A stretch of 64,000 nt of DNA from Rebecca billardiae RCC1528 (Eukaryota > Protista > Haptophyta): NCBI GenBank assembly GCA_965240325.2, contig OZ251230.1, positions 1,736,001 through 1,800,000 of the forward strand. Reading direction: 5' to 3'. The translations under genes were made by a program, and so were the position numbers. The notes beneath the pieces were generated by a model. It ran no database searches and was not told where the DNA came from. It worked only from the letters and a program-made list of their open reading frames with translations. How positions within the stretch are numbered: the first letter of the stretch is position 1; every line of letters begins with the position of its first letter. Shown piece after piece: positions 7,959 through 64,000 of this stretch.

Positions 7959-8642
7959 ATGACGCGCTTCACGTCCTCGCACGCACGCTCCTCGTCGAGT
8001 GCCGAGGTGCGCTACGCAGGGCGCGACCGCGCGGATGGTGCTTGCGCACCCATTGCCCGCCCATGCGCGCGCCTCGCTGACCAAGCTCCCCCACCCTCGC
8101 TCTCCGCGTCGCAGTCGTCCAGCCTCCCGACAGACATCTGCAAGACCAGCCGAACGCGGCACACCGCCTCGGCAAGGGCGCAGCAACCGTCCGCGGCCGT
8201 CGTCGCTGCCGTCGAACAACTCGCGCCCGTCGGCCCGGACCACAACCGGACATCGGGGCCCGCCTCAGGGACAACCACGGCCGCGTCCGTGACCAGTGAC
8301 ACGCACAGCGCTCGCAGCCCGGCCGTCCCCACGCTGCCTGAACCATCCGCCTTCGCACACATCGACGCCGACCTTCGCGAGCGCTTCGTCGCGCTGTCAG
8401 CGCAGATTGTGGTCCTGAGTCTGGCGCCATCGACGGACGCCTCGGCCGCCGCGAGTGGCGCGCTCATCAACTCGCTCGTCGACCAGCTGGCCCGGGCGGC
8501 GGACGAGCTGACTCGGCGACAGCTGCACCGGTGCCAGTCCGTGCACACCGTCATCTGCGCGGCGGCCGCGATGATGCACGCGGCGAAAGTGCCCCCGACC
8601 GACATCGCCGACCCGGCCGTTCGCGCCGCCGACGACTTGTGA
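7959..8642 (+). CDS. Hypothetical ORF (possibly repeat-derived)
   Basis: Open frame with helical-looking C-terminal half (DLRERFVALSAQIVVLSL...LVDQLARAADEL); no recognisable motif. Confidence 0.25.
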   Translation: MTRFTSSHARSSSSAEVRYAGRDRADGACAPIARPCARLADQAPPPSLSASQSSSLPTDICKTSRTRHTASARAQQPSAAVVAAVEQLAPVGPDHNRTSGPASGTTTAASVTSDTHSARSPAVPTLPEPSAFAHIDADLRERFVALSAQIVVLSLAPSTDASAAASGALINSLVDQLARAADELTRRQLHRCQSVHTVICAAAAMMHAAKVPPTDIADPAVRAADDL

Positions 8643-9314
8643 GTCGTTCGCTCACTGGCCCCGAAATGGCCACTCCGACCCGAGCAGCCGTGGCCGGGCG
8701 GCACCGGCCCGCGACCGGGCGGCCGTACCGACCGAAAACTTGTCGGCAGCCCTCGCCGCATTTGAGTCATCCAGCAACCTGATGATGCCAATCGATAAGA
8801 CCATTGCTTAGCATTAGTACAGGGATGTGCATGATAGCGTCACAGAACCGCTTGGCTTTAATCAAAACTTTCAGGAAATATTTAATCGTAGTTTATAATA
8901 TTAATAACAATATTGTAATTATAACCGACATTACTATGGATTATTTTTAAAAATTAAATAATGATCAAAAGAATTAGGCATGCGCCATCGCCATTCGCGA
9001 GTGCCTTTTTCGTCGAATAAAACTGGTATTCGTCCCTGCTGACCGATCTGCTTCAGCTGACTGACTCCGCCGATGACGCCGGTGCCGTTGCATGCCACGA
9101 CGTCGAATAAAATGACGACCAGAATGAGCACGCGCCGAGCGCGCCCAAAAAACACGGCTGGGCCTCTCGGCAGCTCGGTGTCAATTGCCGAAGCAATTTA
9201 CAGCTGGAGGCGTGATTGGCTGATTGCGGCATTGCGCCACCGCGACCACGCACACTCGGCTTGGAAGCGCCCGGGCCCGGGCGTGAACACGACGCGAGGC
9301 TGCTTCAGACGCGG

Positions 9315-11705
9315 ATGAAGTCGAGCCCCGCGCACCAGAATGCCGCGTTGGACGGCGGCACAACGGCGGTTGCAGGCGTGCACGACGGCATGAGAGGCGC
9401 CCCCCTCCCGACGCGCTACGTGCTCGACCGCGCTGAGGTGTTGGGCCTGCTCTGTGCCCACCTCACGGCTGAGGGGCTGACGCTCACCGCCGGCGTGCTC
9501 AGGCAGGAGGTGGCTCAGCGCGGGGCTGAGCTGGGCGCGAGCTCCTTCGAGCGGGCTGCGGACGGGCCCAGCGACCGGCTCGACGCACTCCTCGCTCGAG
9601 CCGCGGCGCATGCCGACGGCATTCCTGTGCAGCAGCACGCCCGCCAACGCGCTCAGCTCGCTGCGGATCCGCGCCGCCCGCACCGCGCCGTGCGCGTGTG
9701 CGTTGCGCGGGCATCCGGGGACGAGGCGGTCGTGCTCGTGCATGGCGAGGCTGGCGGCTGCGAGGCGCACACCCAGACGCCGCCCGAGCCCGTGCCGCCA
9801 CCGCACCCCGCGGCCCCGTGCATCACTCCGAGCGCCTCACCCGCGCGCACGCAGCCGGCGCGCGGCGTCCCAGCGCCGGCTGCGCGGCAGGCGCCGGGCA
9901 CGATGGGCGCGCACGCGGCGCTTCGGCGAGATGTACTCGACTCAGAGATGGGCACGCCCGTCGGCTCCGCCCCCGCCACCCAGCCGCATCCGGCCGGCAC
10001 CTCCGGCGCGCGCGTGCCGGCTGCCGACCATCGGTCGGCGCCCGCGGCAGCCGGCAGCCTCACCTGCACGCCTGCTCAGGGCGCGGCACAGCCGGAGGAG
10101 GCCGAGCCGGCGGAGGGCGCGGCGTGGCGGGGGCGTGAGCTGGCATTCGACGCCTACGCGCCGCCGGCGCCTCCCGAGGGCGCGCACCGGCCGCGCCACC
10201 GCACGGCAGAGCTTGCTCATGAGCGCGAGCTGCGCGGCCGCTCGCGCGAGCGGCGCGCTTCGCCGAGCGAGCGCGAGCGCCGCTGGGACCGGTCGTGGTC
10301 GAGTGGCTCGCGGTCGTCGTCAAGGCGCACGGCGTCGCCTCGGGCGCATCGTCACGAGCAGCGCCGAGCGAGCCGCGCCCACAGCCCCGAGCGCAGCCCT
10401 CGACGCGCGCGCGTGTACGAGGGACGCGGCGCGCGCGCGGTGCCACACGACTGGCCGTGTGTCGAGTGTCATGCGCTCAACTTCCCGTACACGCGGAACG
10501 GGCGCGAGCTGAAGACGCGCTGCTTCCGCTGCGGCGCGCTGTGCCCTCGCTGGGTGGAGCGGCGCGTGCGCGAGCACTCGCGCCGCGCGCATCGCGCTGG
10601 GCGGCGCGGCGGCGGTGGCGGCCGCCGCCACCGGGGCCCTGACCAGGGCAGCGACAGTGACGATGCTCACGGCAGCGACGGCGGCGGCGGCGGCGGCGGC
10701 AGCTGGTCTTGCGCCGCCTCGGACTCCGACGCGAGCGAGCGCGGCTCGGGCTCGGCGGGGCACAAGCGCGCGCGCCGAGGCTCGCGCGCGCCTGCGCGCG
10801 CCGAGCCCACCGCGCCATCGGCGCGCGGCGGCCCGACGCTCGGCTGCGTCGCGCCGGCCGGCGGCGGCGCGGCTTGCCCGACTGGCCTTACTGCGGCTCC
10901 GAAGCCAACTGCGCTCCCCGCGGACGGCGGTGCCCTTGCGGCCGCCCAGCTCGAGCTGGCGCGCGCGAAGGAGGAGGCGCTGGCCGCCGCGCTCGCGCAG
11001 CTCGCGGAGGAGCGCGCCAAGCTCGCCGAGGCCGTGCAGCTCGCACAGCGAGCGGCCACCGAGGCCGCGCGTGCGTCCGCGCGCGCTGCGCCGCCCGTGT
11101 CCTCTCCGCGTCGCGATGATGAGACGATCGCGGCCGCGCGGACGGTCGACGCGGCGCCACCCCAGGCTCAGCGCGGCGCGGCGGCGGGTACACCGCCGAG
11201 GGCTGCGAGCAATGCTCGCGCGGAGGCGTCCGCGCGGCAGCCGCCCGCCGCCGTCGCATCCGCCGCGCCCCTCGCCCAGCCCGCCCATGGCGCCCCTCTC
11301 AGCGCCGAGCGCGCGCAGCCTCAGCAGGCTGCAGCAGCTGCATCGGCAACCGAACCGCCGCCAGCCGACGCTGCTGCAGGGGACGCCGAGCAGAGCAAGA
11401 AGCGGCGCCGGCGGGGAGGGCGGGGTCGAGCAGGCGCGGCGCAAGCCGATGTGCCGAGCACGTGCGCAGACGACCTCCGGGGCGCGCTCGCGGCGACGCG
11501 CGCTCTGCAGCGCCAGGCCTTGCAGACCTGTGACGGCGCGAGCTGCGGCGGGGGGCCGTCGGCCGACGCGCCGCGCGGCGGCGCTCGGAGCCTCAAGGAG
11601 TGGCTCTGCACCGCACCGGGGTGCGCCGCCATCAACTACCCGTACGAGCGGGATGGCGCAACTGTGAAGAGCGCGTGCTACAAGTGCGGCGCACCGCGTG
11701 ATTGA
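9315..11705 (+). CDS. LisH-motif protein with RS-rich region and two RanBP2-type zinc fingers (putative nuclear RNA-binding protein)
   Basis: LisH-like EVLGLLCAHLTAEGLTLTAGVLRQEV; DWPCVEC...N...CFRCG and EWLCTAPGC...N...CYKCG; Arg/Ser-rich centre; ATG at 9315. Confidence 0.75.
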   Translation: MKSSPAHQNAALDGGTTAVAGVHDGMRGAPLPTRYVLDRAEVLGLLCAHLTAEGLTLTAGVLRQEVAQRGAELGASSFERAADGPSDRLDALLARAAAHADGIPVQQHARQRAQLAADPRRPHRAVRVCVARASGDEAVVLVHGEAGGCEAHTQTPPEPVPPPHPAAPCITPSASPARTQPARGVPAPAARQAPGTMGAHAALRRDVLDSEMGTPVGSAPATQPHPAGTSGARVPAADHRSAPAAAGSLTCTPAQGAAQPEEAEPAEGAAWRGRELAFDAYAPPAPPEGAHRPRHRTAELAHERELRGRSRERRASPSERERRWDRSWSSGSRSSSRRTASPRAHRHEQRRASRAHSPERSPRRARVYEGRGARAVPHDWPCVECHALNFPYTRNGRELKTRCFRCGALCPRWVERRVREHSRRAHRAGRRGGGGGRRHRGPDQGSDSDDAHGSDGGGGGGGSWSCAASDSDASERGSGSAGHKRARRGSRAPARAEPTAPSARGGPTLGCVAPAGGGAACPTGLTAAPKPTALPADGGALAAAQLELARAKEEALAAALAQLAEERAKLAEAVQLAQRAATEAARASARAAPPVSSPRRDDETIAAARTVDAAPPQAQRGAAAGTPPRAASNARAEASARQPPAAVASAAPLAQPAHGAPLSAERAQPQQAAAAASATEPPPADAAAGDAEQSKKRRRRGGRGRAGAAQADVPSTCADDLRGALAATRALQRQALQTCDGASCGGGPSADAPRGGARSLKEWLCTAPGCAAINYPYERDGATVKSACYKCGAPRD

Positions 11706-46927: not shown

Positions 46928-48711
46928 CACCTTGAAAAAACGCCACCAGCGTTCGCGGCCACATTGAGAAGTTTTTCACGGCTCATTGATCGACGCTAAG
47001 CAAGAATCCACCATTAAGGCAGGTCGGCCAAGGGAATCACGTCCATCGATACGCGACCAATCAACAGGCTCCATTCGGTTTACTCATGATTCCGGCGAGG
47101 CTGGTAATGCGGGTAGATGAAATGGCGCTGTCTGATTGGTCAGCCGTTTGCTATCGTTCCTTCGCGGCATCCAATCATCTGCAACTCTGAAACGAAGAAC
47201 AGGGCCCAGGTCTCTTTTCGGGTGCTCGGTAGATCGAAAGCGGGCGCTCGCCCCTCCGAGCAAAGGACTCCGAGCGAGCGAGGCTCGCCATCCACCTGCG
47301 CCGCGGGCGGGCGGCTGGGCCACGCATCGCGTGAGGTCGTGCAGCCGTTGCGTTGCCCTGCTGTGGGCGTGTGCTGCCTGGGCTGCGGCAGATCAGCACT
47401 ATGCTTCAGCCTGCCACGCAAGTGCTCCTCCTTGACACCGTCTCCGGGTCTGGAAGTCATGCGCGCCGGCCCCGAGCGCCCGATCCGCTGAGCCGCGTGT
47501 CGGCATGGCGCAAGCGTGCGCGCGCATGATGCGCGACACTGTGAGTCGGTGTCGCGGCTGCCATCGACGAATATAGCTCTTCATGGGCGCATATGGTGGT
47601 AATCCGCCCGAAGTCCGCCGACGCATTCACTTGCAGTGGCACGAAGGCTTGCGCGCTCTCACTCACTCCGAGCCCGCGGTCCGCGCGACTGGTCAGCTTT
47701 TGGCCTGTCTGCGCAGACGCGCGGGCGCGTACTGGCGAGAGCGCGTTAGGGCTGCTTAAGCTGCAGAACAGTACTACGCTTGTCCTCGCCGCACACCCGC
47801 TCCTCCTTGACGACGTCTCAGCGTCTCAAAGCCATGCGCGCCACCCGTTGCGGACAAGGGAGGGAAGCCGATCAGATCCGACTGATCAGCGGGGAGTGCG
47901 CACGCGCGTGATGAGCGACAGGGAGCACTGCAGGCGTGACCGCTACAGGCGAATGCAGCCTTACTTGGCGCATATTGAGCCACCTGGATCGCATCCACCC
48001 GTAGATTTGTCGCGCACCAAAGGCGTGCACGCTCTCAAGCCCGGCGCCGTCATTGAATCCGAGCCCGGGCGGTTCTGCGGATGGTCGTCTGCTCTCTGCA
48101 CAGACGTGTGGGCCCAAGCTGGCGCGAAGGATCGCGCGGTAATCAGGGCTACGCTCACCCACGTCCCACAGCGGATCGACCCCCTATATCTCTCACTGTG
48201 CACGCGCACTTCTCCCTATTGACCTGCTACCGCCGAATGACGGGCCCGCGGACTGTCTGCCCTTCCGCTCGCGGTTGCACGCCGCCGCGTGCAACCCTTG
48301 GAGACCCGCAGGCGGTGGGAAGGGAGAACGCTCGCAGGGCGGCGTCACGCGTGATGCTGTTCTGCCGCAGCCCATGCAGCGCGCGCCCACTGCAGGGCAA
48401 CGCGGCGGCGGACGCGTTTCGTGCGGCCCAGTACAACGTGACGGTGGCGGCGGACGGGCGAAGGGCAAAAAGCGCCGCCTCCGTCCTCCAACGAAGACCC
48501 ACGAGGCTAGTGAAAGGGTCCACTCCCGAAATCCCTTTGCTGGAGCTTGCGCATCTGCGGCTTCGGCGCCTATCGTCCGAGATTCGCACGCTTCCCAGCT
48601 GATTATTGCCGCAGGTAAGTGCACCTTAGGCGATCAAAAAATGAGCCCTATGCAGTTCACGTGAGAACGAATGTAGAGGGCCACGGACGCTGGTGGCGTT
48701 TTTTCAAGGTG
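46928..48711. mobile_element. Non-autonomous TIR DNA transposon (1784 bp)
   Basis: Perfect 25-bp TIR CACCTTGAAAAAACGCCACCAGCGT; degenerate inner inverted repeats (about 47314-47400 vs 48350-48431); empty site present in the paralogous segment at 57841-57856. Confidence 0.93.
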
Positions 48712-49711
48712 TGTATATCTCCCGCCTACTTACAGCGTGCATTGATAGTATACTGCTGATTGATATGTCAGGTAGAAGCTGAAGCGACGCGGAGCGTGGT
48801 TGACCGTTTAGGCGGTTGCTCGAGGTCTCGTGGTCGTCCGCGCTTCGCGGGTGGGTTGCTCGCCCGCGATGGCTTATTCAATATTAATATAAGCTAAAGC
48901 TAGCAGCAGTAATTCACTCCGTTAAGTCAAACTGCTGTAAGACTAGTGACTATCAACGTAATATATAAATTAAAAGCGGAACGCTGATGTTTAACGGTGG
49001 GCCGAGCCGTGCGCACCGGGACCGGCTGAGCCGCAACCGCCCGCGCCAGATGTGAGATGCCAGACTATGGGGCCGGGACCAAAGTTGTTGATGAACTGGG
49101 TGGGTATCCCAGTGCCGGAATCCGGGAGTCGCCTCGAATGCCGACGGTACGTAATTTTACCACGACGACTCGATAACGGGCACGAGCACTCTCGTAACGG
49201 TCGTCATCATCGTCAGCCCATCGGAGTAGCCCGGGCAGTAGCCCAATCTGCTCGTCATAAGCAGGCGGTCCCGCGCAGCCGGTCCTGCGTCCCGTGCCGT
49301 GCCACGAATCAGGCCGGGTTACTAGGCGGGTAGTGAGTCTGGCACGGAGTGGTGTGCCACCGAATCGCCAATCGCAATCGGGCATCGGCGAATGGCGTGC
49401 CCCGGCCCGGCACTTAGCAGCTAACGACTCAGGGACGTCATAAATAATCGGACGACCATGCATGCATGCTGACTGGTCGACTCTCATCATAGCGTGCGCG
49501 GATGGTGCTCAGAGGCCGGTGTCGCGATCGAACAGCTCCGCACGCACGTTGGCAGCCACCAGCATCTCTCGAAAGGCTGGTCGTCGGTATTATTGCGCGT
49601 CCGGCGACCTGCTGGAGTGCGGTGAGTGAGTGCGGTCGGCTAGGCCCGACCGACACGATCTACATCGAGCGCGCTCCAGCCCCTCAAAGGGTGCCTCTCG
49701 TCGGAAGCCTC

Positions 49712-50581
49712 TCACGGCTTGCGCGTGTGCTGCTCGAGGAGTGTCGCGAACAGCTCCGCCCGCACGTCGAGAGCCGCCCGCACCGTCTCGAAAAGCTGGT
49801 AGCGCGTCTCCGTGTCGAGCCCGACCGACGCAATAGCACGCTCGAGCCCCTCAAAGTGCCCGTCGTCACACCCGATGTGGAGCGGGAAGAAAGAACTGTC
49901 ACGCGGCGACAGCTGCGTGAACTTCTGGATGGCCTTGAAGGTGAAGGTGTTCATGCGGGGGGCGATGAGCTCGTTCTGGTAGGCGAGGACCGCCATCGCC
50001 ACGGCGGCTGGGCTCTTCTCGAGCAGCTCGATGACGGTCTTGCTCAGCTTGGTGCCAGGGCCATCAGCGGGCGCCAACTCCGGCATGGTGACCCCGGCCT
50101 CATTTGCGAGTGCCTGCTTGTAGCGGATGAAGAGATCCTTGTGGTGGACGCCTTGCACCCACTCGGCCTCGATGCCCTCCTCTGCCATCGAGGCCAGCAT
50201 CTCGTCGTCGTACTCGCCGCACTCCTCGCGCCGATTGATGTCAACCGCGGTGTACGCCTCTGAGCCGACGTCCAGCTTGGCCTGGATCATCTCGACCATG
50301 CGGACAAAGTGGCGCGAGTAGGCGGAATACTCGGTGGCATAATCCAGCAGGGCGGAGGCCATCGGCACGGCGATCTTGTTGTCCGCGAGTGCGTGGAAGT
50401 ACGGGTGCTCGGCCGCCGGGTGCGCGAGGGCAAACTCACGTACGGCGGCGAGGAAATCCAGCGGGCTCGTCTTCTCCGTGTCGAAGAGCGTCTGGTTCAG
50501 CCCCTCGGCCTTCCCATCGTTGAGCTTCTCTGCGGGGGTGCTGAACTCGATGGGCGTCATCGTCGCCTCGGCGTGCGGCAT
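49712..50581 (-). CDS. Heme-oxygenase-like diiron oxidase (CADD/PqqC/TenA/BesC superfamily), copy 1
   Basis: HPYF...YATEY...N-x2-EE; candidate ligand set E120, H147, E204, H235-x3-D239-x2-H242, matching the CADD-type diiron motif. Confidence 0.82.
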   Translation of the reverse strand: MPHAEATMTPIEFSTPAEKLNDGKAEGLNQTLFDTEKTSPLDFLAAVREFALAHPAAEHPYFHALADNKIAVPMASALLDYATEYSAYSRHFVRMVEMIQAKLDVGSEAYTAVDINRREECGEYDDEMLASMAEEGIEAEWVQGVHHKDLFIRYKQALANEAGVTMPELAPADGPGTKLSKTVIELLEKSPAAVAMAVLAYQNELIAPRMNTFTFKAIQKFTQLSPRDSSFFPLHIGCDDGHFEGLERAIASVGLDTETRYQLFETVRAALDVRAELFATLLEQHTRKP

Positions 50582-50744
50582 GTCGACGGGTCACGTGGTG
50601 GACCCGGGCGTGGTGGATGGGTGCGCACCCACCCGCTTTGCAGGGTTGGGGTGCGCCAACCGAACGCGCGCCGAAGAAATCCGGCGCGTATCTCATAATC
50701 AGTGTGGGATGGGATGGGATCTGTCTGGGTCGTTATCATATATC

Positions 50745-50745
50745 A

Positions 50746-50791
<46 letters not shown>
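50745..50791. repeat. (TA)n microsatellite in the HDO/MFS divergent intergenic region
   Basis: Direct observation. Confidence 0.95.
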
Positions 50792-50793
<2 letters not shown>

Positions 50794-50818
50794 GGGTAGT
50801 GAACAACGTTCGTCAACG

Positions 50819-52336
50819 ATGACGACCGCCCGGGCCGGCATGACAACCACGGGCGCGGGCACGACCGCGGCGCTGTGCTTGCTGACGATGATCGGTCCGC
50901 TCTCGCTCAACCTGTACACGCCCGCACTACCCATCATGACGCAGGCGATCGCGGGCGGCTTTGTCAGCTCGATGCAGCTCACCCTTGCAGCGTACTCGCT
51001 CACGTTCGGCCTCATGCACGTGCCCGCTGGCGCAATCTCTGACGTGCAGGGCCGCTGGCCCGTGCTGCGACTCGGCGCGGGCGTGTACCTGCTTGCATCA
51101 TGCGTGTGCCCGCTGGTCACATCGGCGCTGCAGCTGACGACGCTGCGCATCCTCCAGGGCGCCGGCGCTGCTGGCGTGTCGATCACTGCCCAGGCATCTG
51201 TGGCAGACCTCTTCGAGACGCAGATTGCACGCCAGCGCGCCATCGGCTACCTAATCATCGCGAGGCAGTCCGCGTACTTCGCTGCCCCTGCGCTAGGCGC
51301 GCTCGCGCTCAAGCTACTCGGTTGGCGATGGGTTCTCGCGCTCTACCCGATGCTGGGCGCGCTCGTGGCGATTGTGAGCGCTTTGCACCTCGCGCCGCTC
51401 CTGGCAGCGCGCGACGCACGCACGCGCGCCAGCGCAAAGCCGTATCCGTCGAGCTCAGGCAGCGGTGACGTCGGCAGCGACCAACACATCGCGCACCCAG
51501 GCGGCACGATGGCACTTGTCGGCGCTGTGCCACCGCGTGCCGCCGCTGCTGCGCGCCTGCGCGCCGGCTGCTGCAGCGTGCTGTCGCCATACCGCTCGTT
51601 CTTGTTCGACGCTCGCTACCACGGCTATGCCTGGGCGGACGCCCTCACAGTGGGAGCCGAAGTGGCGTTCGTCAGCGCGGGCAGCTACGTACTGCAGAGC
51701 TTCTACCAGCTTCCTGCTGCCGTGTTTGCGGCCGCAATGGCGTTGCTACCCACCGCAGTCATCGCGGGCGTGCACCTGGCACCGCGGCTGACAGGGATGC
51801 AGCTGAGCAGCGCATACTGGGCGGTGCCGGCGGGCCTGCTTGTCGGAACCATCGCGCTCGCAGCCGAGCTCGTGGCCGCTAGCGCCATGGACAAGCCTCC
51901 GTGGCCCCTCTTCTGTGCGGCTGGCATGCTGATGGCGCTCGGGCGTGGTGTGCTGACGCCGTTGGTCCAAGGCTTCCTGACGGAGCACTGCATTGGGGCC
52001 GTTGGGAGTGCCATGGCCATGCTCAACTGCTGGCGGTTCTGCGCCGGCACGGCGAGCACATACATCGTCGGCGTGGTGTACGACAATGGGCCGTGGCCGA
52101 CGGGAGCCCCTGCGCCCGCGGCGGCAGTCGTCCTGTCGCTGCATGTGCTCGCACTTGTGCTCTTCGAGACGCTTGCGCGGAGAGCCGAGCGCAGCGGCGA
52201 GAGAATGGCGATCGCCCCGGACGTGGAGCCGTCCAAAAGTGAAGATGGCGCTGGGGCAGCTGCATCTGGAGTGACGGCAGCCACGCCGGCGTATGAGGAC
52301 GCTGCTGCCGCTGCTGCTGATGCGGCTCGGCGCTGA
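50819..52336 (+). CDS. MFS transporter, DHA1 Bcr/CflA-like drug:H+ antiporter
   Basis: IGPLSLNLYTPALP (TM1), GAISDVQGRWPV (motif A), LRILQGAG (motif B), APALGA (motif C); about 12 TM; intronless; ATG at 50819. Confidence 0.9.
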   Translation: MTTARAGMTTTGAGTTAALCLLTMIGPLSLNLYTPALPIMTQAIAGGFVSSMQLTLAAYSLTFGLMHVPAGAISDVQGRWPVLRLGAGVYLLASCVCPLVTSALQLTTLRILQGAGAAGVSITAQASVADLFETQIARQRAIGYLIIARQSAYFAAPALGALALKLLGWRWVLALYPMLGALVAIVSALHLAPLLAARDARTRASAKPYPSSSGSGDVGSDQHIAHPGGTMALVGAVPPRAAAAARLRAGCCSVLSPYRSFLFDARYHGYAWADALTVGAEVAFVSAGSYVLQSFYQLPAAVFAAAMALLPTAVIAGVHLAPRLTGMQLSSAYWAVPAGLLVGTIALAAELVAASAMDKPPWPLFCAAGMLMALGRGVLTPLVQGFLTEHCIGAVGSAMAMLNCWRFCAGTASTYIVGVVYDNGPWPTGAPAPAAAVVLSLHVLALVLFETLARRAERSGERMAIAPDVEPSKSEDGAGAAASGVTAATPAYEDAAAAAADAARR

Positions 52337-52535
52337 GTCAAGTGGAATAACATTTTATATAATTATAATCTGCTGATTAAAATCAGAAGCCCGCGTGCTG
52401 TGTCTCCTGTGTCTCATCGGACCGTTGAGAGTTTGAGACATCACGGGTGACATCACCGGGCCGTCACGGAACCGGAGAGTCGGACCAAGCCGGACCCGGT
52501 CCATCCAAGGCCAAGGGCCGTATGATGCATTCGGA

Positions 52536-54019
52536 TGGCGCACGGCCCCCCCGAAAGGTCTGACTTGAGCGTGAGCGAAAGCCGGGGGGGGGGGGGGGGG
52601 CGCACGTGCTCCGCAAAATCAAAAAAGAGGATGCGCGCAGGATTTGGGGGATTTTTGTAGGTCGTGGATTTAGGTGTGAAACCGCAGCATAGAGACCCCA
52701 TAGGCCATATCGCTGCTCATGATTGATTGCGTTTGTACTGCCCCTTAATCTTTGGATAGTAAGTAATAGAAGAAATCGGAATCAAATAGGACGAAGTCAT
52801 CTCTGATACCTTTCTGATAGTCAAGATTCGTGTGTTGAACTGACCATAAAAAAGGTGAGATGTCGAACTAATTCTCTGGATAGCTGTTCACTCCTCAGAT
52901 TCATTCATCAAAGCGACGCGATATGGTATTGCGCGGGCAGCTTGAATCGACGTTCCCGCGCGCCCTGGTATCATACGGTTATCAAGCTACTCTTGCTGAT
53001 ATACTTTTGGTCATCTACTGATACGACGTCAATGCGGGTGGCAATCCATTCTTGTGATTGCAAGAAGCCAGCAAGAATGGATTGCCACCCGCATTGACTG
53101 GCCTGAAGATCTCATGAGCATAAGAATTTCTACCGCTTCACGCACGACCCTTGATTCTCTCCCATTTAATACCGGCGCGTCCGGGAGAGCTTGACGAATA
53201 TGAACGATAAACTTGAGCGGACAAATCTTCATAATATCTCCCTTCATGATTAATACTATACCATGGTACGGCCTTTGGCTTTGCGGCTCGCGCATTGACG
53301 GGCGCGGGGCATCAGGCTCCGAACGAGGCGCAGAAAGCCGCCACTGCCCATGTAGGCCGCCGCCGCACGATCGTTCAATCCGACAGACTCAGCGCAGGTG
53401 CGCGCGGCTGCGGTGGGTCCCAACGGCCGTCGGCATCGCATTGCCATTCGTGCCTCTTTCCCCCCTCGCGCCCCGCCCCGGTGCCGACCCGCGTCCGCGC
53501 GCGTCGGCGCGCCCGTCGCGCAGTTTATTAACCCGACTGCTCAGCCGCATCACCCAGCGCAGCTTCGCCCGCGACGACGGCTTCGCCTGGCTACCACTGC
53601 TCATCAGCCGCGTGCCCGGCTTCGGCTCGGCGGGCGTCCGGTTCGGCGAGCACGGCTGCAGCGCAGCACGCGAGACCTCGGCTGGATGGAGCGGCCGGCT
53701 GTGACGCGGATGGCGGAGGCGGGCTTTGGGCTCGGGCTGCCCATGAGCCACCACGGGCTGTACCGTCTGCGCAGATCGCGCTCGGCCCGGCCGCAGCCCT
53801 CCTGAGCGCGCGCCTCAGAGCTGAGACTGATCACGGGCAGGCGCACGAGCGACACTGCCGTGCGAGCCGCCGCGTGTGCTCGCAGGCGCGGCGCTCGCAT
53901 GGGCTCAACGCGGGCGCAGCGGGTGCGCGCAGCTGGCGCACGCAGCCACGCGCGGAACTAGCTAGGGCCGTGCGCCCTCAACTTCGTTGTTTACTACCCG
54001 AAGATCGGCGTAGCCGATC

Positions 54020-54020
<1 letters not shown>
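52536..54020 (+). mobile_element. Asymmetric-TIR/hairpin element, family 2 (copy E)
   Basis: Left T-GGCGCACGGCCC, inverted copy GGGCCGTGCGCC at 53965-53976, spacer CTCAACTTCGTTGTTTACTACCCGAA, hairpin GATCGGC-GTA-GCCGATC at 54003-54019. Internal 53360-53500 is homologous to copies A and B. Confidence 0.8.
53028..53098. other. Perfect 27-bp-stem hairpin with 17-nt loop
   Basis: GTCAATGCGGGTGGCAATCCATTCTTG / CAAGAATGGATTGCCACCCGCATTGAC are exact reverse complements. Confidence 0.95.

Positions 54021-54021
<1 letters not shown>

Positions 54022-54107
<86 letters not shown>
54022..54107. repeat. (GA)n microsatellite
   Basis: Direct observation; abuts the right end of copy E. Confidence 0.97.
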
Positions 54108-54109
<2 letters not shown>

Positions 54110-54518
54110 CCGCGTGGCCGGCCTTGCTAGTACTTAGTCACTAGCCGTTAGTAGAGGAAGTTCTAGTCTGTAGCTTGCCCGACTGAGAAGAATCCGGGAG
54201 CCGCCGATTCAGTCTTTCACTCATTTCAGACGGCGGTGCCGTGAGTGTAAGACGGTAAACGCCGAGGCAGGCACTGGCAGTGCCAGTCCGGGACGACGAG
54301 TCCGCCTATACCGACTACTACCGTAGTATTCTCGAAATCTGAGTCGGCACCGCTGCATCGTCAGGTCCCGAGGTCGAGGAGCTTGGCTGGGCGCCCGGCT
54401 GACACTGATAACTTCAAGAGTTAGTTAGTTAGATTAATAGATCGCGCTGCCTATTACCCCATGCCGCTTCATGTCGGAGCATGACTGCATGTCCGCTCAG
54501 ACGTATAAGCTAGCAGCC

Positions 54519-54714
<196 letters not shown>

Positions 54715-55538
54715 GCCAGATGTATGTATGTATGTATATATATATGTCTAGCCGTCCTCGAAGCGCCTGCGCCATCCAGATGCAGCTTGGAAGATGCAGC
54801 TCGAGAGCCGCCAAGCCGCACGAGAGCGAGGCACGAGGCACCATCGTGCAGAGGCGGGCGCCCTGAAAGATGCAGGCCCAGAACAGCTGCAGCCATCAGG
54901 ACAGTGGGCGCTTCCGAAACGAAGGGCGTCGTCCGCTGCGTGAGCGAGAGAGACACAGGGCCGCGTCGGTCGGCTCGGCGCCAGATGAAAGAATCCAGGC
55001 CACCAATTGGCTGTCCAGAGCCACCATGCCAACCCGCTCAAAGCTCAGGAGCAGCACAACGAGTTAGCTAGTTCTGGGCCGTTGTGCGTGAGCACAGAGC
55101 AGGCTCGAAAGACCCTCGTGGCACGAGAAGAGGGTGGCCAAGATGGCAGCCGGACTTGCGCTCGGCCGCCTGCCTCGGGCCGATTGGCAGGCAGGTGTTG
55201 ATACCATACGGCGCATTGCGCTCCCACCGTCCTCTTAGACAATCAGTTATTGTGCCAATAACCCCACATATATACAGAGAGGGGCACTGGGGCAGGGCTG
55301 CGGGGCCCCCGAGTGCGGGTGGCGCATTGCCTGACCTGGACCTTGGAAGGCGCGGACGCATTCTATGTGTCTGCTGCACTCTGAGCCTGACGCTTTCAGC
55401 CTGTTGCACTTGTACAGCAGAGTAATCCGCACTGAGAATACTGTCGTCGTCGTTATATTATATATATATATATATATATCTGATTCAGTCATGTAACACC
55501 GAGTTTATTGACGGACGACGTCCCGGCCGCCGTGAGAC

Positions 55539-57797: not shown

Positions 57798-59860
57798 TAT
57801 TCTTTTTTTTAATAGTAGTACGCACGTACTACGACTATCGATCACAGTGTATATCTCCCGCCTACTTACAGCGTGCATTGATAGTATACTGCTGATTGAT
57901 ATGTCAGGTAGAAGCTGAAGCGACGCGGTGCGTGGTTGACCGTTTAGGCGGTTGCTCGAGGTCTCGTGGTCGTCCGCGCTTCGCGGGTGGGTTGCTCGCC
58001 CGCGATGGCTTATTCAATATTAATATAAGCTAGCAGCAGTAATTCACTCCGTTAAGTCAAACTGCTGTAACTAGTGACTATCAACGTAATATATAAATTA
58101 AAAGCGGAGCGCTGATGTTTAACGGTGGGCCGAGCCGTGCGCACCGGGACCGGCTGAGCCGCAACCGCCCGCGCCAGATGTGAGATGCCAGATGGGGCCG
58201 GGACCATTGTTGAACTGGGTGGGTATCCCAGTGCCGGAATCCGGGAGTCGCCTCGAATGCCGACGGTACGTAATTTTACCACGACGACTCGATAACGGGC
58301 ACGAGCACTCTCGTAACGGTCGTCATCATCGTCAGCCCATCGGAGTAGCCCGGGCAGTACGTAGACCAATTAAAATTTGCTCGGCAGCAGGCGGCAGTCC
58401 CGCGGTCCTGCGTCCCGTGCCGTGCCACGAATCAGGCCGGGTTACTAGGGTAGTGAGTCTGGCACGGAGTGGTGTGCCACCGAATCGCCAATCGCAATCG
58501 GGCATCGGCGAATGGCGTGCCCCGGCCCGGCACTTAGCAGCTAACGACTCAGGGACGTCATAAATAATCGGACGACCATGCATGTCACTGGTCGACTCTC
58601 ATCATACTATTCATAGCGTGCGCGGATGGTGCTCAGAGGCCGGTGTCGCGATCGAACAGCTCCGCACGCACGTTGGCAGCCACCAGCATCTCTCGAAAGG
58701 CTGGTCGTCGGTATTATTGCGCGTCCGGCGACCTGCTGGAGTGCGGTGAGTGAGTGCGGTCGGCTAGGCCTGACCGACACGATCTACATCGAGCGCGCTC
58801 CAGCCCCTCAAAGGGTGCCTCTCGTCGGAAGCCTCTCACGGCTTGCGCGTGTGCTGCTCGAGGAGTGTCGCGAACAGCTCCGCCCGCACGTCGAGAGCCG
58901 CCCGCACCGTCTCGAAAAGCTGGTAGCGCGTCTCCGTGTCGAGCCCGACCGACGCAATAGCACGCTCGAGCCCCTCAAAGTGCCCGTCGTCACACCCGAT
59001 GTGGAGCGGGAAGAAAGAACTGTCACGCGGCGACAGCTGCGTGAACTTCTGGATGGCCTTGAAGGTGAAGGTGTTCATGCGGGGGGCGATGAGCTCGTTC
59101 TGGTAGGCGAGGACCGCCATCGCCACGGCGGCTGGGCTCTTCTCGAGCAGCTCGATGACGGTCTTGCTCAGCTTGGTGCCAGGGCCATCAGCGGGCGCCA
59201 ACTCCGGCATGGTGACCCCGGCCTCATTTGCGAGTGCCTGCTTGTAGCGGATGAAGAGATCCTTGTGGTGGACGCCTTGCACCCACTCGGCCTCGATGCC
59301 CTCCTCTGCCATCGAGGCCAGCATCTCGTCGTCGTACTCGCCGCACTCCTCGCGCCGATTGATGTCAACCGCGGTGTACGCCTCTGAGCCGACGTCCAGC
59401 TTGGCCTGGATCATCTCGACCATGCGGACAAAGTGGCGCGAGTAGGCGGAATACTCGGTGGCATAATTCAGCAGGGCGGAGGCCATCGGCACGGCGATCT
59501 TGTTGTCCGCGAGTGCGTGGAAGTACGGGTGCTCGGCCGCCGGGTGCGCGAGGGCAAACTCACGTACGGCGGCGAGGAAATCCAGCGGGCTCGTCTTCTC
59601 CGTGTCGAAGAGCGTCTGGTTCAGGCCCTCGGCCTTCCCACCGTTGAGCTTCTCTGCGGGGGTGCTGAACTCGATGGGCGTCATCGTCGCCTCGGCGTGC
59701 GGCATGTCGACGGGTCACGTGGTGGACCCGGGCGTGGTGGATGGGTGCGCACCCACCCGCTTTGCAGGGTTGGGGTGCGCCAACCGAAGGCGCGCCGAAG
59801 AAATCCGGCGCGTATCTCATAATCAGTGTGGGATGGGATGGGATCTGTCTGGGTCGTTAT
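57798..59860. repeat. Segmental duplicate of about 46864-50736 (minus the TIR insertion), carrying the HDO gene
   Basis: Collinear near-identical sequence; homology stops at GGGTCGTTAT (50736/59860). Confidence 0.95.
58836..59705 (-). CDS. Heme-oxygenase-like diiron oxidase, copy 2
   Basis: Intact 289-aa ORF that differs from copy 1 only at D22G and D80N. Confidence 0.82.
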   Translation of the reverse strand: MPHAEATMTPIEFSTPAEKLNGGKAEGLNQTLFDTEKTSPLDFLAAVREFALAHPAAEHPYFHALADNKIAVPMASALLNYATEYSAYSRHFVRMVEMIQAKLDVGSEAYTAVDINRREECGEYDDEMLASMAEEGIEAEWVQGVHHKDLFIRYKQALANEAGVTMPELAPADGPGTKLSKTVIELLEKSPAAVAMAVLAYQNELIAPRMNTFTFKAIQKFTQLSPRDSSFFPLHIGCDDGHFEGLERAIASVGLDTETRYQLFETVRAALDVRAELFATLLEQHTRKP

Positions 59861-60211
59861 GGCGGGCCGTAGGTCCGCCCTTGTAGTGCCCGGGGAAAAG
59901 ATAAGAATAACTCGAGGAAAAAGATCCGCGGCCCCGGCCGTGCTACGCAAACGAATTCCGCCCTCTGATCATCAACCCACGTTCAACGTGACTGCGGCTA
60001 CTACTCTGTCTGAATGACAGTGACAGTGACCAACTTAGCAACCGGGCATCTGATGAGGAGACTGACGATGTGCCCATGCGTGACGACCAGCCGGGGTCAT
60101 CGTGCGGCGCTGAGGCCTGGCCAGACCTGTGACTCAGTGGTCACGGCACCAGTGCCACCGTGCTGACCTACCAGTACCCGCGCCCCTCACGGCCGCACGG
60201 GCGTCTGTACA

Positions 60212-60372
60212 CCACCCGTCCCAGCCCCCGACATCAAGGCTCCCTGGTATTGAAAATACCCGCAGCTATTCGTTACCAGCCCATTTCATAGTCACTGAGC
60301 TCATGACCGTCCATGGACGGTCATGAGCCCGCTGAGCCGAAGACGGGCTCACGGGCTTTCTGGGACGGGTGG
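60212..60372 (+). other. 161-bp structured repeat, copy 1 (13-bp closing inverted repeat, internal 30-bp palindrome)
   Basis: CCACCCGTCCCAG...CTGGGACGGGTGG; palindrome at 60299-60328; inverted homologue at 63767-63928. Confidence 0.8.
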
Positions 60373-61597
60373 TAGTGCGTCCGACCAGGTCGCCTCCAGC
60401 ACGAGCCGCAAGTTAAGGTGGCGCGCTCCTTCCGCTTCCCTGCCGATTCAGATTTGACACCTGGCATCAATGGTCCAGTGAGCTGCGGCTGCTGCAGCCG
60501 CAACGTGCTGGCGCGGCGAGACAGTGGACCAAGACCACTAAGCACCATGGCTTACTCGTGCAGCATCCGCAATGCGCGCGCACAAAGAGTTCAGAGCGTA
60601 ACGCAGGGCGACGCGCGCGCGCGGCGAGCGAGCCGGGCAACCACCGCCCGCCTCCACATTCAGCCCCCGCGCGCGCGGCGCGCACCATGACCATCCGCCC
60701 CAGTGCCATAGCGCGCAGCGCCTGCGCGGTCGCACCTGGGTCGTTGGACGTATGCCGTGGCGCGGGCGCGGCGCGGCGATGCCGCGCTTGCTTCTCCCGA
60801 GGGCCTGAGGCCCCCACGCGCGGCGGACTCCGCGCGCGCGCCCCGCCTAATGTGCAGCGCGCGGCGGGCGGCGCTGGCCAAGCCTGGCCACCGGAGCCTC
60901 CATGCGCCGGGCCGTTGCGCGGTGCCGCCTGGTGCGTATTCGGTCTCGTCAGATGCGTGCTCGGTCTCGTCAATCGTTACCCGCGTCGCTTGCGGCAGGC
61001 GGCCCCCCTTCTAGCGGTTCTCGAGGCCAACCATCGACGCTTAGACGCCTACGGCCGCGCGAAGCGACGGCGCCGAGCGGGCGCGCGCGCCCGGTACGAG
61101 AGGTAGACTCCCACATCGTGCCTCCACACCCCGCCCGCGCCAGCGCACCCGCCCCTGGCGCTCTTCCCGCTCGTCGGCGGCGCTCGGCACCCGAGCCGAG
61201 CCGAACGCGTGCACGGCGCACGCCGCAGCGCGGCGCGACGGGCGCGGCGCGGCGCGCTCGGAATTTTCCGGAAGAGGGCTCCGAGCGTACGGGCCGACGC
61301 GCCCACTCGCGGCGCGCTCCGCGCGCGCCCCGCCAAATGCGAGGTGACACACGAGGCGCGGGTCGAGACGCTCGGGTGCTCGGCGCGGCCGTCAAACAGG
61401 GCCCCCCCGCGAGTTGAGGAGCGTCCCCGGATTCCATTTTCCGGACTCTCCTTGATGCTACGCAAAGCCGCGGGGGCGGCCGTCCCGTCGAAACGGACGT
61501 GCCCCCCCCGCGGAAAAAGAAACAGGAAAAAGAAAACCGCCTCGCAGAGAAAAGAAAATCGCCTCGCTCACTGCCGGGTCGCTTCGCTCACTACCGG

Positions 61598-62327
61598 CTT
61601 GCAAACCAAGCCCCCCAAAACGGGATGGCGAGCACTGGGCGACGCTAGGGCCCGCCTGCGCAGCGCTCCCAAGGCCGCATGCGGGCGTGACAGCCGTGCG
61701 CGGGCATTTTGTGGGGGCTAGAAGACCCGTAGGCAGCAATCGTGCCGCCTCGTCGACGCCCTCGCCGCCCTCTCCGCGCGCAGAGACCTGCCGGATGGCA
61801 AGCGCAGTTCTGGAGAAGGCCTGTCCGACGAGCGTGATGGGCACGCGTGCGCCCCTGGGACATTCAAAGGTCGGCTTTTTCGCTTCTGCGAGATGGGCAT
61901 GGGTGTACTCAATATCACTGCTTCGCCGGCAGCCATGCCGACATCGATCAGACCGCACACACACGCTCGACAGCTGGCAGGCCAGCAACCGGTTGAAATG
62001 GCGGCGCGCGTGATCACAAGGCTGTCGGCGAGGAGACCGCAGTGCGAGCCAAAGGAGGGCGCGCAAGACATGCATCTCGGTCGTGAGGCGTGCATGAGCC
62101 ACGAGCACGGGCACGACGTGCACGGCAAAGCCCGTCATGCTCCTCGACGCGCACGCGCCGCGGCGGACGACCGAGGAGGGCGCGCGCAGGCTGGCCTTCT
62201 TGGCGGCGGCTGTCCGGGAGTGCCCGCGCACGCGCAACGCGTATTCAAAGAGCTCCCGGAAGGCATCGACTCCTAAGGGACGGTGCCTTTCGCCGCGCGA
62301 GGGGTTTTGGGGGGCTTGGTTTGCAAG
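61598..62327. mobile_element. Non-autonomous TIR DNA transposon (730 bp)
   Basis: 24-bp perfect TIR CTTGCAAACCAAGCCCCCCAAAAC flanked by the direct repeat CTACCGG (61591-61597, 62328-62334); equally parsed as a 25-bp TIR with a 5-bp TSD TACCG. Confidence 0.9.
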
Positions 62328-63766
62328 CTACCGGGCGCCCTCGCAGCTCCCACTGGGGACGCTCGGCCGAAAACCATGTGGCGCCTGGCGCGGAGCGCGT
62401 GGGCGGCGCGCGCCAAATCCAACGCTGGCGCGGACATCGCGAGAAGACTCCCGAGGGGGTTTTCGCCCGATTCGCGATTGCTGCCCTCGTCGTCTCGCGT
62501 GCAGGTCGAACGGGGGCCAAAGTCGACGCGTTTGGAGGCACGCTCGGCGCGTCGACACGATCGTGCGACCTGGGGCGGTCCTCGCCCGACTTGCACGTTG
62601 AGCGCTCGCACGAGCCATAGCATCAAGCGCTGCGCACGACAACCACCTCGCGCGATCCACCGTCGCGCGTCGGCCTCGGTGCGGAAAGGCCCTCATCACG
62701 AGGTGTCTCGCGGGCGGGAAGCGCCATCGCACGCGACGCAAGATTTGGCGCGGCCTTCTGAACACCATAACCGGAATCCACACACCGGACTGTCGCGTGC
62801 CCCGGTTGGCACGGTCGGGCGCATGCAAATCCGTTTGCTACGGTCGGTGGCGTTCCAGAGCGGGCGATCATCTTTCACGCTCGCGAGCTCGCGGCCAAAA
62901 ATCGCTCGGCGCTCGAGGGACCGCACGCACTTGCCGGGTCTGCAGCCGTGGAAGGAACCGCGTCTTGGCGAGTCGGCGACCCAGGCGACAACGCGCTATC
63001 GCCGATCCCAGACGGGCATCCGCCACGAGATGATACGCCGAGCGTGCAAGATCGCCGCGCCATCCTCGCCCATGGCACGGGCGCTGCGGGAGGAGGCCGA
63101 CGTCGTGAAGCCGGTGGCGCATGCGCTGCGCTTCCTGTGCCTGATCGAGCAGCGCGTGCCCACCCTCGATCGCGAGTGGCACACGCTCTCGCACTGCGCG
63201 CGCGTACACCGCCAACAGCTCCTGATACCGCCGAACGTGCGAGTGCCGCCCAGCTGGAGCACCTCAGCGCCGCACGGGCCTCTGCGCGCGCTGCGCACCA
63301 CACCGCGCGCGCGAGAGACACGTCGACCTGAGCATCGCCACCGCTCCTTGCGTTGAGGGCGATCACGCCATCGCCGTCACCGCCGAAGTGGCGCGACGCG
63401 GGTGCAGTCGCCGGTAGATACTATGACTAGACAGTGATCAATAAACGGTAATACGGTACGTACGATTTTAATATAAAGACCGGGCCCATTACACTGATTT
63501 CAAATAATAATAACCGTTAGAAATCAACATAGAGAGACAGAGAGACAGAGAGACAGAAATCGGTAGGATGCACTGACTTCCAGACGACCTGAACAAATGA
63601 ATCAGGACATCACACTCCGCCACAACTTGAACTGTTTTCGTGTTTAGCTCCAAGGACAAACCGTCACCGTCAGGCGCACACGGGCACGCCGCCGTCGCAC
63701 GCCAATCAGTTGGCAGTGCGTGCGCGCAGTCGAAGGCTCGGCACGATGACGAGTAGCACAGTGGGT

Positions 63767-63928
63767 CCACCCGTCCCAGAAAGCCTCTGAGCCCGTCTTC
63801 GGCTCAGCGGGCTCAAAAACTTCGCAGCGAGGTTTTTGAGCTCAGTGACTATGAAATGGACTGGCAACGAATAGCTGCGGGTATTTTTCAATACCAGGGG
63901 CCTTGATGTAGGGGGCTGGGACGGGTGG
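63767..63928 (-). other. 162-bp structured repeat, copy 2
   Basis: Reverse complement of 60212-60372 with a different, still base-paired internal hairpin (63811-63841). Confidence 0.8.
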
Positions 63929-64000
63929 CAGGAATACACGCGCAATCACACTGTCGCTGAGCTCGCATTCCAGAGTCATCTGTCGCGTTATTATTCGTCA

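Follow-up and report, generated by a model that had tools for sequence, protein, structure and literature searches.

Intact nuclear genes for HDOs, diiron-type proteins with a heme-oxygenase-like fold, exist in eukaryotic algae: the stretch of DNA that we analysed (64,000 nucleotides, hereafter the window) carries one whose product, judged by its sequence and predicted structure, is a genuine eukaryotic HDO. The HDO class of enzymes is growing fast, and its unusual chemistry includes N-oxygenation, C-C scission and the formation of nitriles, alkynes and azetidines. According to a 2026 review, about a dozen HDOs have been characterised and the superfamily is spread over myriad bacterial species; our search of the literature found nothing on eukaryotic HDOs or on an HDO-methyltransferase-TauD fusion. 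The explanation that we consider probable as a whole is that the algal protein belongs to a distinct HDO subfamily, whose first ligand-bearing helix is broken by a conserved excursion, itself helical and about 20 residues long, that it comes from the eukaryotic branch of this subfamily and stands alone, and that its coupling to the adjacent MFS transporter gene is possible.

The gene (copy 1) occupies positions 49712 to 50581 on the minus strand and is a single intronless ORF encoding 289 aa, or 282 aa if translation begins at M8 (50560). Both this gene and its MFS neighbour had been described as intronless in the first-pass annotation, and each is indeed one uninterrupted ORF, full-length in comparison with homologues; the string from the first Glu to the first His quoted in that annotation is present in the HDO ORF. 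The gene is carried on a eukaryotic nuclear contig, GC3 is host-like (0.88 and 0.79), the codon composition is strongly host-adapted and intronless genes are common elsewhere in the host genome. A PF14518 search of the genome found two HDO copies only (29.3-29.6 bits). A search for RNA runs containing the locus found none; in two runs with a low share of it, coverage was confined to repeats and to pieces of the 3' end of the MFS gene. Logan contigs from ERR14847150 were considered as evidence of transcription and rejected for their genomic look, as they stop at the (AT)n tract between the two genes or enter repeats.

The AF2 model of the algal protein is confident (pLDDT 93.5, pTM 0.89) and forms a heme-oxygenase-like helical bundle, for which CADD is the best Foldseek match (TM 0.85 by target). 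When the model was compared with solved structures by VIA-align, the top matches were all HDOs, namely HrmI (Z 23.8), CADD (Z 22.9) and both UndA and BesC (Z 21). The 3-His/3-carboxylate set is complete: E120 (codon at 50222-50224), H147 (50141-50143), E204 (49970-49972), H235 (49877-49879), D239 (49865-49867) and H242 (49856-49858), all on the minus strand, align with E81, H88, E142, H174, D178 and H181 of CADD in the family-profile alignment. The initial description of a diiron-type protein with a full E/H/E/H/D/H set is thus borne out. The family profile, built from 41 members, matches CADD (4.6e-19) and BesC (2.5e-16), and the alignment pairs all six ligands. The algal sequence itself passes PF14518 marginally (29.9 bits, cut-off 28.9) and matches zero NCBIfam families at E <= 1, including TIGR04305 (CADD) and NF042919 (BesC); a bacterial relative reaches 20.6 bits against NF042919, for which the cut-off is 500. 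A single-sequence PDB search suggested an ankyrin-repeat identity, which was spurious and came from a 'PLHxxxDDGH' stretch; three repeat proteins among the HMMER matches (P0119, P0137 and P0148) align with this stretch and were set aside. We infer that the algal protein binds metal and performs O2 chemistry. That it is instead a metal-free protein of the same fold, of the TenA thiaminase II or PqqC type, is hardly credible. TenA and PqqC structures do match the model at Z 17-20, as expected from the shared fold, and the automatic names of some relatives read PqqC or TenA. However, a Pfam scan of the algal protein found no match to PF03070 (TenA/PqqC), the 3His/3carboxylate set varies little or not at all within the family, and at the profile level the protein is matched with CADD and BesC rather than TenA or PqqC. 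This kinship, which the first-pass annotation had named as evidence that would refute its own reading, is not supported.

The spacing between E120 and H147 is 27 residues in the alga but only 7 in both CADD (E81 to H88) and BesC, so that exactly this interval is longer by 20 residues; the profile alignment confirms the unusual spacing reported initially. The excursion (residues 121-146, that is, the 26 residues between the two ligands; positions 50144 to 50221, minus strand) is modelled by AF2 as a loop, a helix at 126-134 and a short helix at 139-142, which would split the first ligand-bearing core helix. An acidic insertion had originally been presented as a trait of the alga, but it is common to the family: 27 is the modal spacing, found in 88 of 117 family domains, and what is algal is the extreme acidity, the net charge of the excursion being -8 against a family mean of -3.3, the most acidic of all. 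The subfamily has the spacer consensus NLxEExG..GIxxEWVxGVPH, of which the alga keeps N116, E119, E120, G122, G136 and H147, and the six ligands are retained in 111 of the 117 domains. An exhaustive HMMER search found 196 relatives; a word-index protein search, constrained by its sensitivity, returned the query alone. By its sequence, the algal protein can be classed with an HDO subfamily that is uncharacterised and has CADD and BesC as relatives. It matches 19 of the 23 highly conserved family columns and departs at four. One of these is a second-shell position, seven residues beyond the second Glu ligand, at which Tyr is nearly invariant (113 of 117 members). Both algal copies have Asn211 there, the sole Asn at this column among the 117; the tyrosine would have been uniquely lost in the alga (Y211N). 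Such departures could reflect decay rather than new function.

In a careful tree, the alga falls into a clade of five rows together with P0023 and P0057 (UFboot 99, SH-aLRT 90). The contigs of these two relatives, which were entered exon by exon and not as spliced models, are eukaryotic and carry exon-split HDO-methyltransferase(-TauD) genes; P0023 is 40% identical to the algal HDO over 169 aa. The algal HDO sits on a long branch, deep branches were not resolved in a quick tree of 117 rows, and an AU test did not reject placing the alga beside the clade that holds both bacterial-record rows (p = 0.58). We therefore base the placement on the local five-row clade and the pairwise similarities, and draw no conclusion on the position of the root. 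The supported clade indicates that the nearest relatives of the algal gene are eukaryotic rather than bacterial, and the algal HDO would accordingly be placed in a eukaryotic branch.

The subfamily is tied to a methyltransferase and a TauD-type dioxygenase, through an operon in one bacterial-looking contig and through fusion in eukaryotes. The former is a marine metagenome contig of 25 kb with an HDO-methyltransferase-TauD-cupin operon, whose methyltransferase is of the class-I SAM type; the TauD part is nearest to TmpA, gamma-butyrobetaine dioxygenase and trimethyllysine dioxygenase, all enzymes of trimethylammonium substrates. Fusions of the three are found in Pyropia yezoensis (KAK1865775.1), in the diplonemid Lacrimia lanifica (EP01063_P013797) and in EukProt transcripts. 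Eukaryotic fusions often have an N-terminal EF-hand domain and some bacterial relatives a cNMP-binding one. The algal HDO stands alone: its ORF ends at residue 289, there is no methyltransferase or TauD exon near the HDO genes on their contig, and a search of the 72-Mb genome for cognate partners gave weak generic methyltransferase matches and one unlinked TauD match only. The algal protein would then have descended as an HDO without these partners, and what it oxidises is probably a small polar metabolite (an amine, an amino acid or an onium-type compound); since the partners are absent and Tyr211 is replaced, this substrate need not be the one usual in the family. Among the relatives, class II aldolase fusions also occur, and in one case a cupin with a weak DMSP_lyase match adjoins the HDO. 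Together with the methyltransferase, these prompt the speculation that the HDO family might have a role in the DMSP pathway; a literature search for a link between the two found none.

The MFS gene (copy 1, positions 50819 to 52336, plus strand) encodes a DHA1/Bcr-CflA-like transporter of 505 aa, starting at the ATG at 50819; the listed GTG at 50702 would require translation of the TA tract. PF07690 (MFS_1) matches the protein with 73 bits, and the best family match is TIGR00710 (6e-34, 118 bits), below its cut-off of 200.9. The protein is Ala/Gly-rich. The start codons of the HDO and MFS genes are 237 bp apart (50582 to 50818), and this sequence, presumably a shared promoter region, contains an (AT)27 microsatellite identified by TRF (50738 to 50791). 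The head-to-head arrangement across a (TA)n tract was therefore described correctly from the outset. At least four full-length paralogues of the MFS, at 40-41% identity, are found on other contigs of the same genome with no HDO nearby. In other words, the transporter is a member of an expanded and dispersed algal multigene family.

The pair is part of a tandem duplication, which we mapped by blastn in the window and 8 kb beyond. Copy 1 of the duplicated segment (48711 to 55456, about 6.7 kb) comprises both genes with the intergenic region between them and the 3' flank of each. The left part of copy 2 (57847 to 59860) extends from the 3' flank of the HDO gene to 155 bp upstream of it and is 97% identical to 48711-50736. 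HDO copy 2, which lies in this part (58836 to 59705, minus strand), has 3 substitutions in 870 nt relative to copy 1, at nt 65, 81 and 238 of the coding sequence; two of them cause D22G and D80N, and the other is synonymous. In copy 2, a repeat/mobile-element insertion of 6.4 kb, the first 4.1 kb of which lie at 59861 to 64000 and which runs to about 2,285 bp past the window end, replaces the (AT)n tract at exactly the same place and separates the HDO from MFS copy 2 (G000:C13:1802316-1803830). Of the intergenic region, 155 bp by the HDO and 30 bp by the MFS are 99-100% conserved in copy 2. The coding regions of both copies are intact and 99.7-99.8% identical, with three differences per gene. 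As only three differences, two of them non-synonymous, separate the HDO copies, selection (dN/dS) is not measurable between them. HDO copy 2, the duplication of the pair and the family-wide nature of the excursion had all been missed in the first-pass annotation.

It might be asked whether the two genes form an oxidise-and-export module of whatever origin, in which the HDO makes or modifies a metabolite and the MFS exports it or imports the substrate, both served by a bidirectional promoter of 237 bp. The short head-to-head spacing, the transporter being of the DHA1 drug/metabolite efflux type and the duplication of both genes as one unit with intact coding regions are all consistent with this. 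Nonetheless, we regard such a module as unlikely: an MFS gene adjoins the HDO in none of eight contexts of relatives (L009, L010, L011, L032/L033, L035/L036, L037, L040 and the P0030 contig), many dispersed MFS paralogues exist without an HDO, tandem duplication carries along any adjacent gene, and in copy 2 the ORFs have stayed intact although 6.4 kb now split the genes. The enzyme-plus-exporter unit proposed in the first-pass annotation is not supported by these observations; the annotation had itself held that an MFS unlinked and not co-expressed in relatives would tell against it, and the first half of this is what the observations bear out. Support for linkage is limited to the shared intergenic region and the joint duplication. 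Functional coupling of the MFS to the HDO is possible and finds no support in conservation, and in the explanation that we prefer the transporter would be an expanded-family member that shares an intergenic region and a duplication with the HDO.

A more specific version, put forward initially, was that horizontal transfer had brought in a bacterial HDO and its exporter jointly, as one natural-product cassette. In its favour, the 2026 review describes the superfamily as bacterial, both genes are intronless, the AU test allows a place beside the clade with bacterial-record rows, and the best external matches of the MFS are bacterial DHA1 proteins. Yet those matches have 27-36% identity and cover parts of the protein, compared with full-length paralogues at 40-41% in its own genome; the lack of introns is shared by other genes of the genome, the GC3 of both genes is host-like, and the pairing of HDO with MFS occurs in none of the bacterial contexts examined. 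As to the label 'bacteria-derived', the HDO genes closest to the algal one come from eukaryotes, contain introns and are followed by methyltransferase/TauD parts. The cassette reading is largely contradicted and we consider it very improbable.

The absence of cognate partners from the genome could also mean that the HDO lost its original activity once it was separated from them and is now a relic domain, decaying or non-catalytic. Y211N and the three further departures at conserved columns, the long branch and the fact that two of the three differences between the copies are non-synonymous would fit such a history. On the other hand, none of the six ligands has been lost and 19 of 23 highly conserved columns are unchanged, the fold is predicted with confidence, the codon composition remains strongly host-adapted, and neither copy has an indel, frameshift or stop despite the 10-14 indels in the flanks. 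We therefore hold a relic to be improbable, and continue to favour an intact stand-alone HDO.

For the claim of an enzyme-exporter cassette, the outcome of this analysis is mainly corrective. For biochemists, it offers a defined three-enzyme marine system and a natural 'HDO-only' variant with which to compare it. A bolder reading, rather doubtful in our view, would combine a marine pathway of the enzyme trio under second-messenger control with an algal offshoot module of HDO and MFS. If true, there would be an undescribed, widespread marine pathway for an osmolyte-like metabolite of the quaternary-ammonium or sulfonium kind, common to bacteria, red algae, diplonemids and haptophyte relatives, in which the EF-hand or cNMP-binding N-terminal domains would serve as sensors providing that control. 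The algal HDO would have had its active site remodelled (Y211N and the hyper-acidic excursion) and would have been recruited, along with the MFS, to form a new oxidise-and-transport module that was amplified recently.

Among known systems, the best profile match is CADD (CT610) of Chlamydia trachomatis (PDB 1RCW, 8VA9), a self-sacrificing 4-aminobenzoate synthase. The likeness is considerable (Z 22.9, rmsd 2.2 over 212 residues, with the H-x3-D-x2-H motif aligned), whereas the Glu-His spacing differs, and so do the residues of CADD that we take to be the sacrificial one, Tyr27, and the amine donor, Lys152. The position of Tyr27 is occupied by F62 in the alga and Leu in the family, and that of Lys152 by T214 and Ile, respectively. 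Since equivalents of Tyr27 and Lys152 are absent and TIGR04305 is silent, the algal protein appears to be HDO-like in its working without being a CADD-type pABA synthase. The 4-chloro-allylglycine synthase BesC (PDB 7TWA), the lysine N-oxygenase HrmI (PDB 9N1X/9NH9) and UndA (PDB 4WWJ) share with it the seven-helix HO-like fold and the 3His/3carboxylate site. However, these three are bacterial natural-product enzymes with an identity of only 13-16%, and they are without the 20-residue excursion in the first ligand helix, as shown by alignment for BesC. BesC, HrmI and UndA use amino or fatty acids, and these are the classes of substrate given for HDOs in the 2026 review. As for the transporter, Bcr/CflA efflux proteins have about 400 aa compared with 505 aa in the algal MFS, which also scores below the TIGR00710 cut-off. 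The HDO-methyltransferase-TauD trio shares with the alga the spacer motif, the ligands and the conserved H59, Y85, Y88, F92 and R274; it differs in that the alga has the HDO only, with no EF-hand and with Asn in place of the near-invariant Tyr211.

The HDO gene is a genuine nuclear gene, intact and duplicated, whose product is a predicted dimetal oxygenase of the HDO type. In copy 1 it forms an uninterrupted ORF of 289 aa (49712-50581, minus strand), and its ATG lies 237 bp from that of the divergent MFS gene (50819-52336, plus strand, 505 aa). We take the ATG at 50819 as the true MFS start instead of the listed 50702, because a start further upstream would put an (AT)27 tract into the protein. 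All the elements described in the first-pass annotation, namely the intronless divergent ORFs, the TA tract and the spacing of 27 residues between the first Glu and His, are found in the sequence. Genes without introns are common in the genome of this alga (72 Mb, 41 contigs, ~65% GC), of which the window covers G000:C13:1736001-1800000. The two sequencing runs matching the locus are DNA-like and cover the MFS 3' end alone, with no RNA run among the matches, and Logan contigs encoding both HDO and MFS are genomic in appearance.

Absent from that annotation was the tandem duplication of the whole HDO and MFS unit. The left part, 48711-50736, recurs at 57847-59860 with 97% identity, and the right part, 50789-54620, recurs with 98% identity in a stretch starting 2,286 bp past the window end, where the second MFS copy occupies C13:1802316-1803830. 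In copy 2, a 6.4-kb block of repeat/mobile-element DNA (59861-64000 and on to ~2,285 bp past the window end; G000:C13:1795861-1802285) stands in place of the 52-bp (AT)n tract, that is, at the (AT)27 site of copy 1, so that HDO and MFS are ~6.6 kb apart. Its junctions read ...CGTTAT followed by GGCGGGCCGTAGG... and ...GCGGTCAT followed by TATGGGGGTAG. A mobile element may have inserted at a short TA site before (AT)n expanded in copy 1, or the order may have been the reverse. The coding regions of the two copies differ at 3 of 870 nt (HDO) and 3 of 1518 nt (MFS) with zero indels, and the flanks show mismatches of 0.5-1.3% and 10-14 indels each. These differences are too few for dN/dS, but the pattern fits a recent duplication together with constraint against frame-breaking changes. 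One Logan contig from run ERR14847150 (L008:1951-2310) tracks the 3' flank of the MFS gene as far as ~52739 and then passes into unrelated AT-richer sequence, which suggests that sample and assembly differ in structure, for example in whether an element is present.

A 2026 review puts the HDOs at >10,000, found "in a myriad of bacterial species", with about a dozen of the enzymes characterised. The algal protein scores 29.9 bits against PF14518 (iron-containing redox enzyme; Pfam cut-off 28.9) and matches no NCBIfam family. Since a word-index protein search returned the HDO itself only, we ran an exhaustive HMMER search, which gave 196 relatives at E <= 1e-3 with a top identity of ~40%. In an alignment of 41 relatives F92, H147, E204, F231, H235, D239 and H242 are invariant, and H59, Y85, Y88, N116, E119, E120, G122, G136 and R274 nearly so. 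The profile of this alignment matches CADD (1RCW/8VA9) at 4.6e-19 and BesC (7TWA) at 2.5e-16, and all six known CADD ligands align with E120, H147, E204, H235, D239 and H242. An AlphaFold model built on the same alignment is confident (pLDDT 93.5), and HDOs head its list of structural matches: HrmI (Z 23.8), CADD (Z 22.9, rmsd 2.2 over 212 residues), and UndA, BesC and FlcD at ~Z 21. PqqC and TenA rank lower, as expected from the shared fold.

The first Glu-to-His spacing is 7 residues in CADD and BesC, whereas it is 27 in the algal HDO. In the model, helix 108-120 stops at E120 and H147 opens helix 147-162; between the two the chain passes through a loop, helix 126-134 and a further, short helix at 139-142, so that the first ligand-bearing helix is split. 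The insertion is no oddity of the algal enzyme, since 88 of 117 family domains have the same spacing and a conserved motif, NLxEExG...GIxxEWVxGVPH, runs through the segment. Its net charge averages -3.3 in the family and is -8 in the alga, the most acidic of the 117 domains. Position 211, seven residues or two helical turns past the Glu204 ligand, is Tyr in 113 of 117 members and Asn in the alga alone. Asn is encoded in both copies (49949-49951 and 59073-59075), so that this change predates the duplication. L62F, L113V and V207A are milder departures from conserved columns.

Elsewhere, this split-helix subfamily has a methyltransferase and a TauD-type dioxygenase as partners. A marine metagenome contig of 25 kb (L010, positions 8001-11068), bacterial-looking in its gene layout, has HDO at the head of a row of overlapping or abutting genes, with a class-I SAM methyltransferase, then a TauD-family dioxygenase and finally a small cupin behind it. 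The trio recurs, as operon or fusion, on contigs L032/L033 (Tara), L035 and L037 and in relatives P0031-P0033, P0103 and P0106. Many matches are single proteins of 800-1250 aa ordered (EF-hand)-HDO-methyltransferase-TauD, including EF-hand fusions in a cluster with Pyropia yezoensis KAK1865775.1, in the diplonemid Lacrimia lanifica (EP01063_P013797) and in further marine eukaryotes. The TauD part is closest to TmpA, gamma-butyrobetaine dioxygenase and trimethyllysine dioxygenase, all enzymes of trimethylammonium substrates. In other branches HDO is fused to a class II aldolase/adducin domain or a cupin (P0052, P0077, P0127, P0136; P0056), and two more bacterial contexts have HDO by itself or beside a cupin. 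ESM Atlas neighbours include proteins of Planctomycetota and cyanobacteria joining a cNMP-binding domain to HDO; together with the eukaryotic EF-hands, these suggest second-messenger control of HDO in both domains of life. On the contig of relative P0030 (ENA ERZ24794637), a 171-aa cupin directly after HDO weakly matches PF16867 (DMSP_lyase), a hint that some family members may handle sulfonium compounds. Our literature search found no publication on the trio or on eukaryotic HDOs. A search of the algal genome revealed neither a cognate methyltransferase or TauD partner nor an HDO besides the two copies; it gave weak generic methyltransferase matches and one unlinked TauD-family ORF on contig C7.

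The MFS protein matches PF07690, with Bcr/CflA as the top family (118 bits, under the 200.9 cut-off). Outside the alga its relatives reach <= 36% identity over parts, and this Bcr/CflA-like family has no close relatives in a 5.8-billion-protein index. Within the alga, full-length paralogues, likewise intronless, reach 40-41% identity on C21, C8, C24 and C35, and numerous others lie at ~30%. At least five intronless paralogues fall at 33-41%: C21:589184-590581, C8:971427-972773, C24:501105-502463, C24:514903-516234 (the two on C24 being 12 kb apart) and C35:375300-376559. They are a lineage-specific expansion, and given the 40-41% paralogues the MFS belongs to an expanded algal family and is not a lone import. 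Moreover, none of the eight genomic contexts examined for HDO relatives places an MFS beside HDO, and the proposed bacterial enzyme-plus-exporter cassette is not supported. Functional coupling of the two genes is the less probable reading: they lie close together and were duplicated together, but the same eight contexts speak against it.

The data do not favour a bacterial derivation of the enzyme either, since its nearest relatives are eukaryotic and intron-split and the GC3 of the two genes (0.88 and 0.79) resembles that of the window's other ORFs. A careful maximum-likelihood tree built from 71 HDO domains places the alga with P0023, P0025, P0040 and P0057; this clade of five rows has an ultrafast bootstrap of 99 and an SH-aLRT of 90. 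P0057, on Tara Oceans contigs, is an intron-split eukaryotic fusion: an upstream 81-aa ORF supplies the missing HDO N-terminus (34% to alga residues 20-81), and methyltransferase and TauD pieces follow across short gaps. On the 63% GC contig of P0023, the best pairwise match (40% over 169 aa), the reading frame shifts over intron-like gaps before a methyltransferase. P0027 and P0208 have contexts of similarly eukaryotic appearance. Because the deeper branches form a polytomy, and a position of the alga next to the clade holding both rows from bacterial records passes an AU test without rejection (p = 0.58), our claim is limited to the nearest relatives being eukaryotic and does not extend to a root or a transfer direction.

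The algal HDO stands alone and has a modified active site; it is an offshoot of a split-helix HDO subfamily that is itself uncharacterised. Identity as a CADD-type pABA synthase was rejected, the equivalents of CADD's sacrificial residues Tyr27 and Lys152 being absent: where CADD has these two residues, the alga has Phe62 and Thr214, and the family consensus Leu and Ile.
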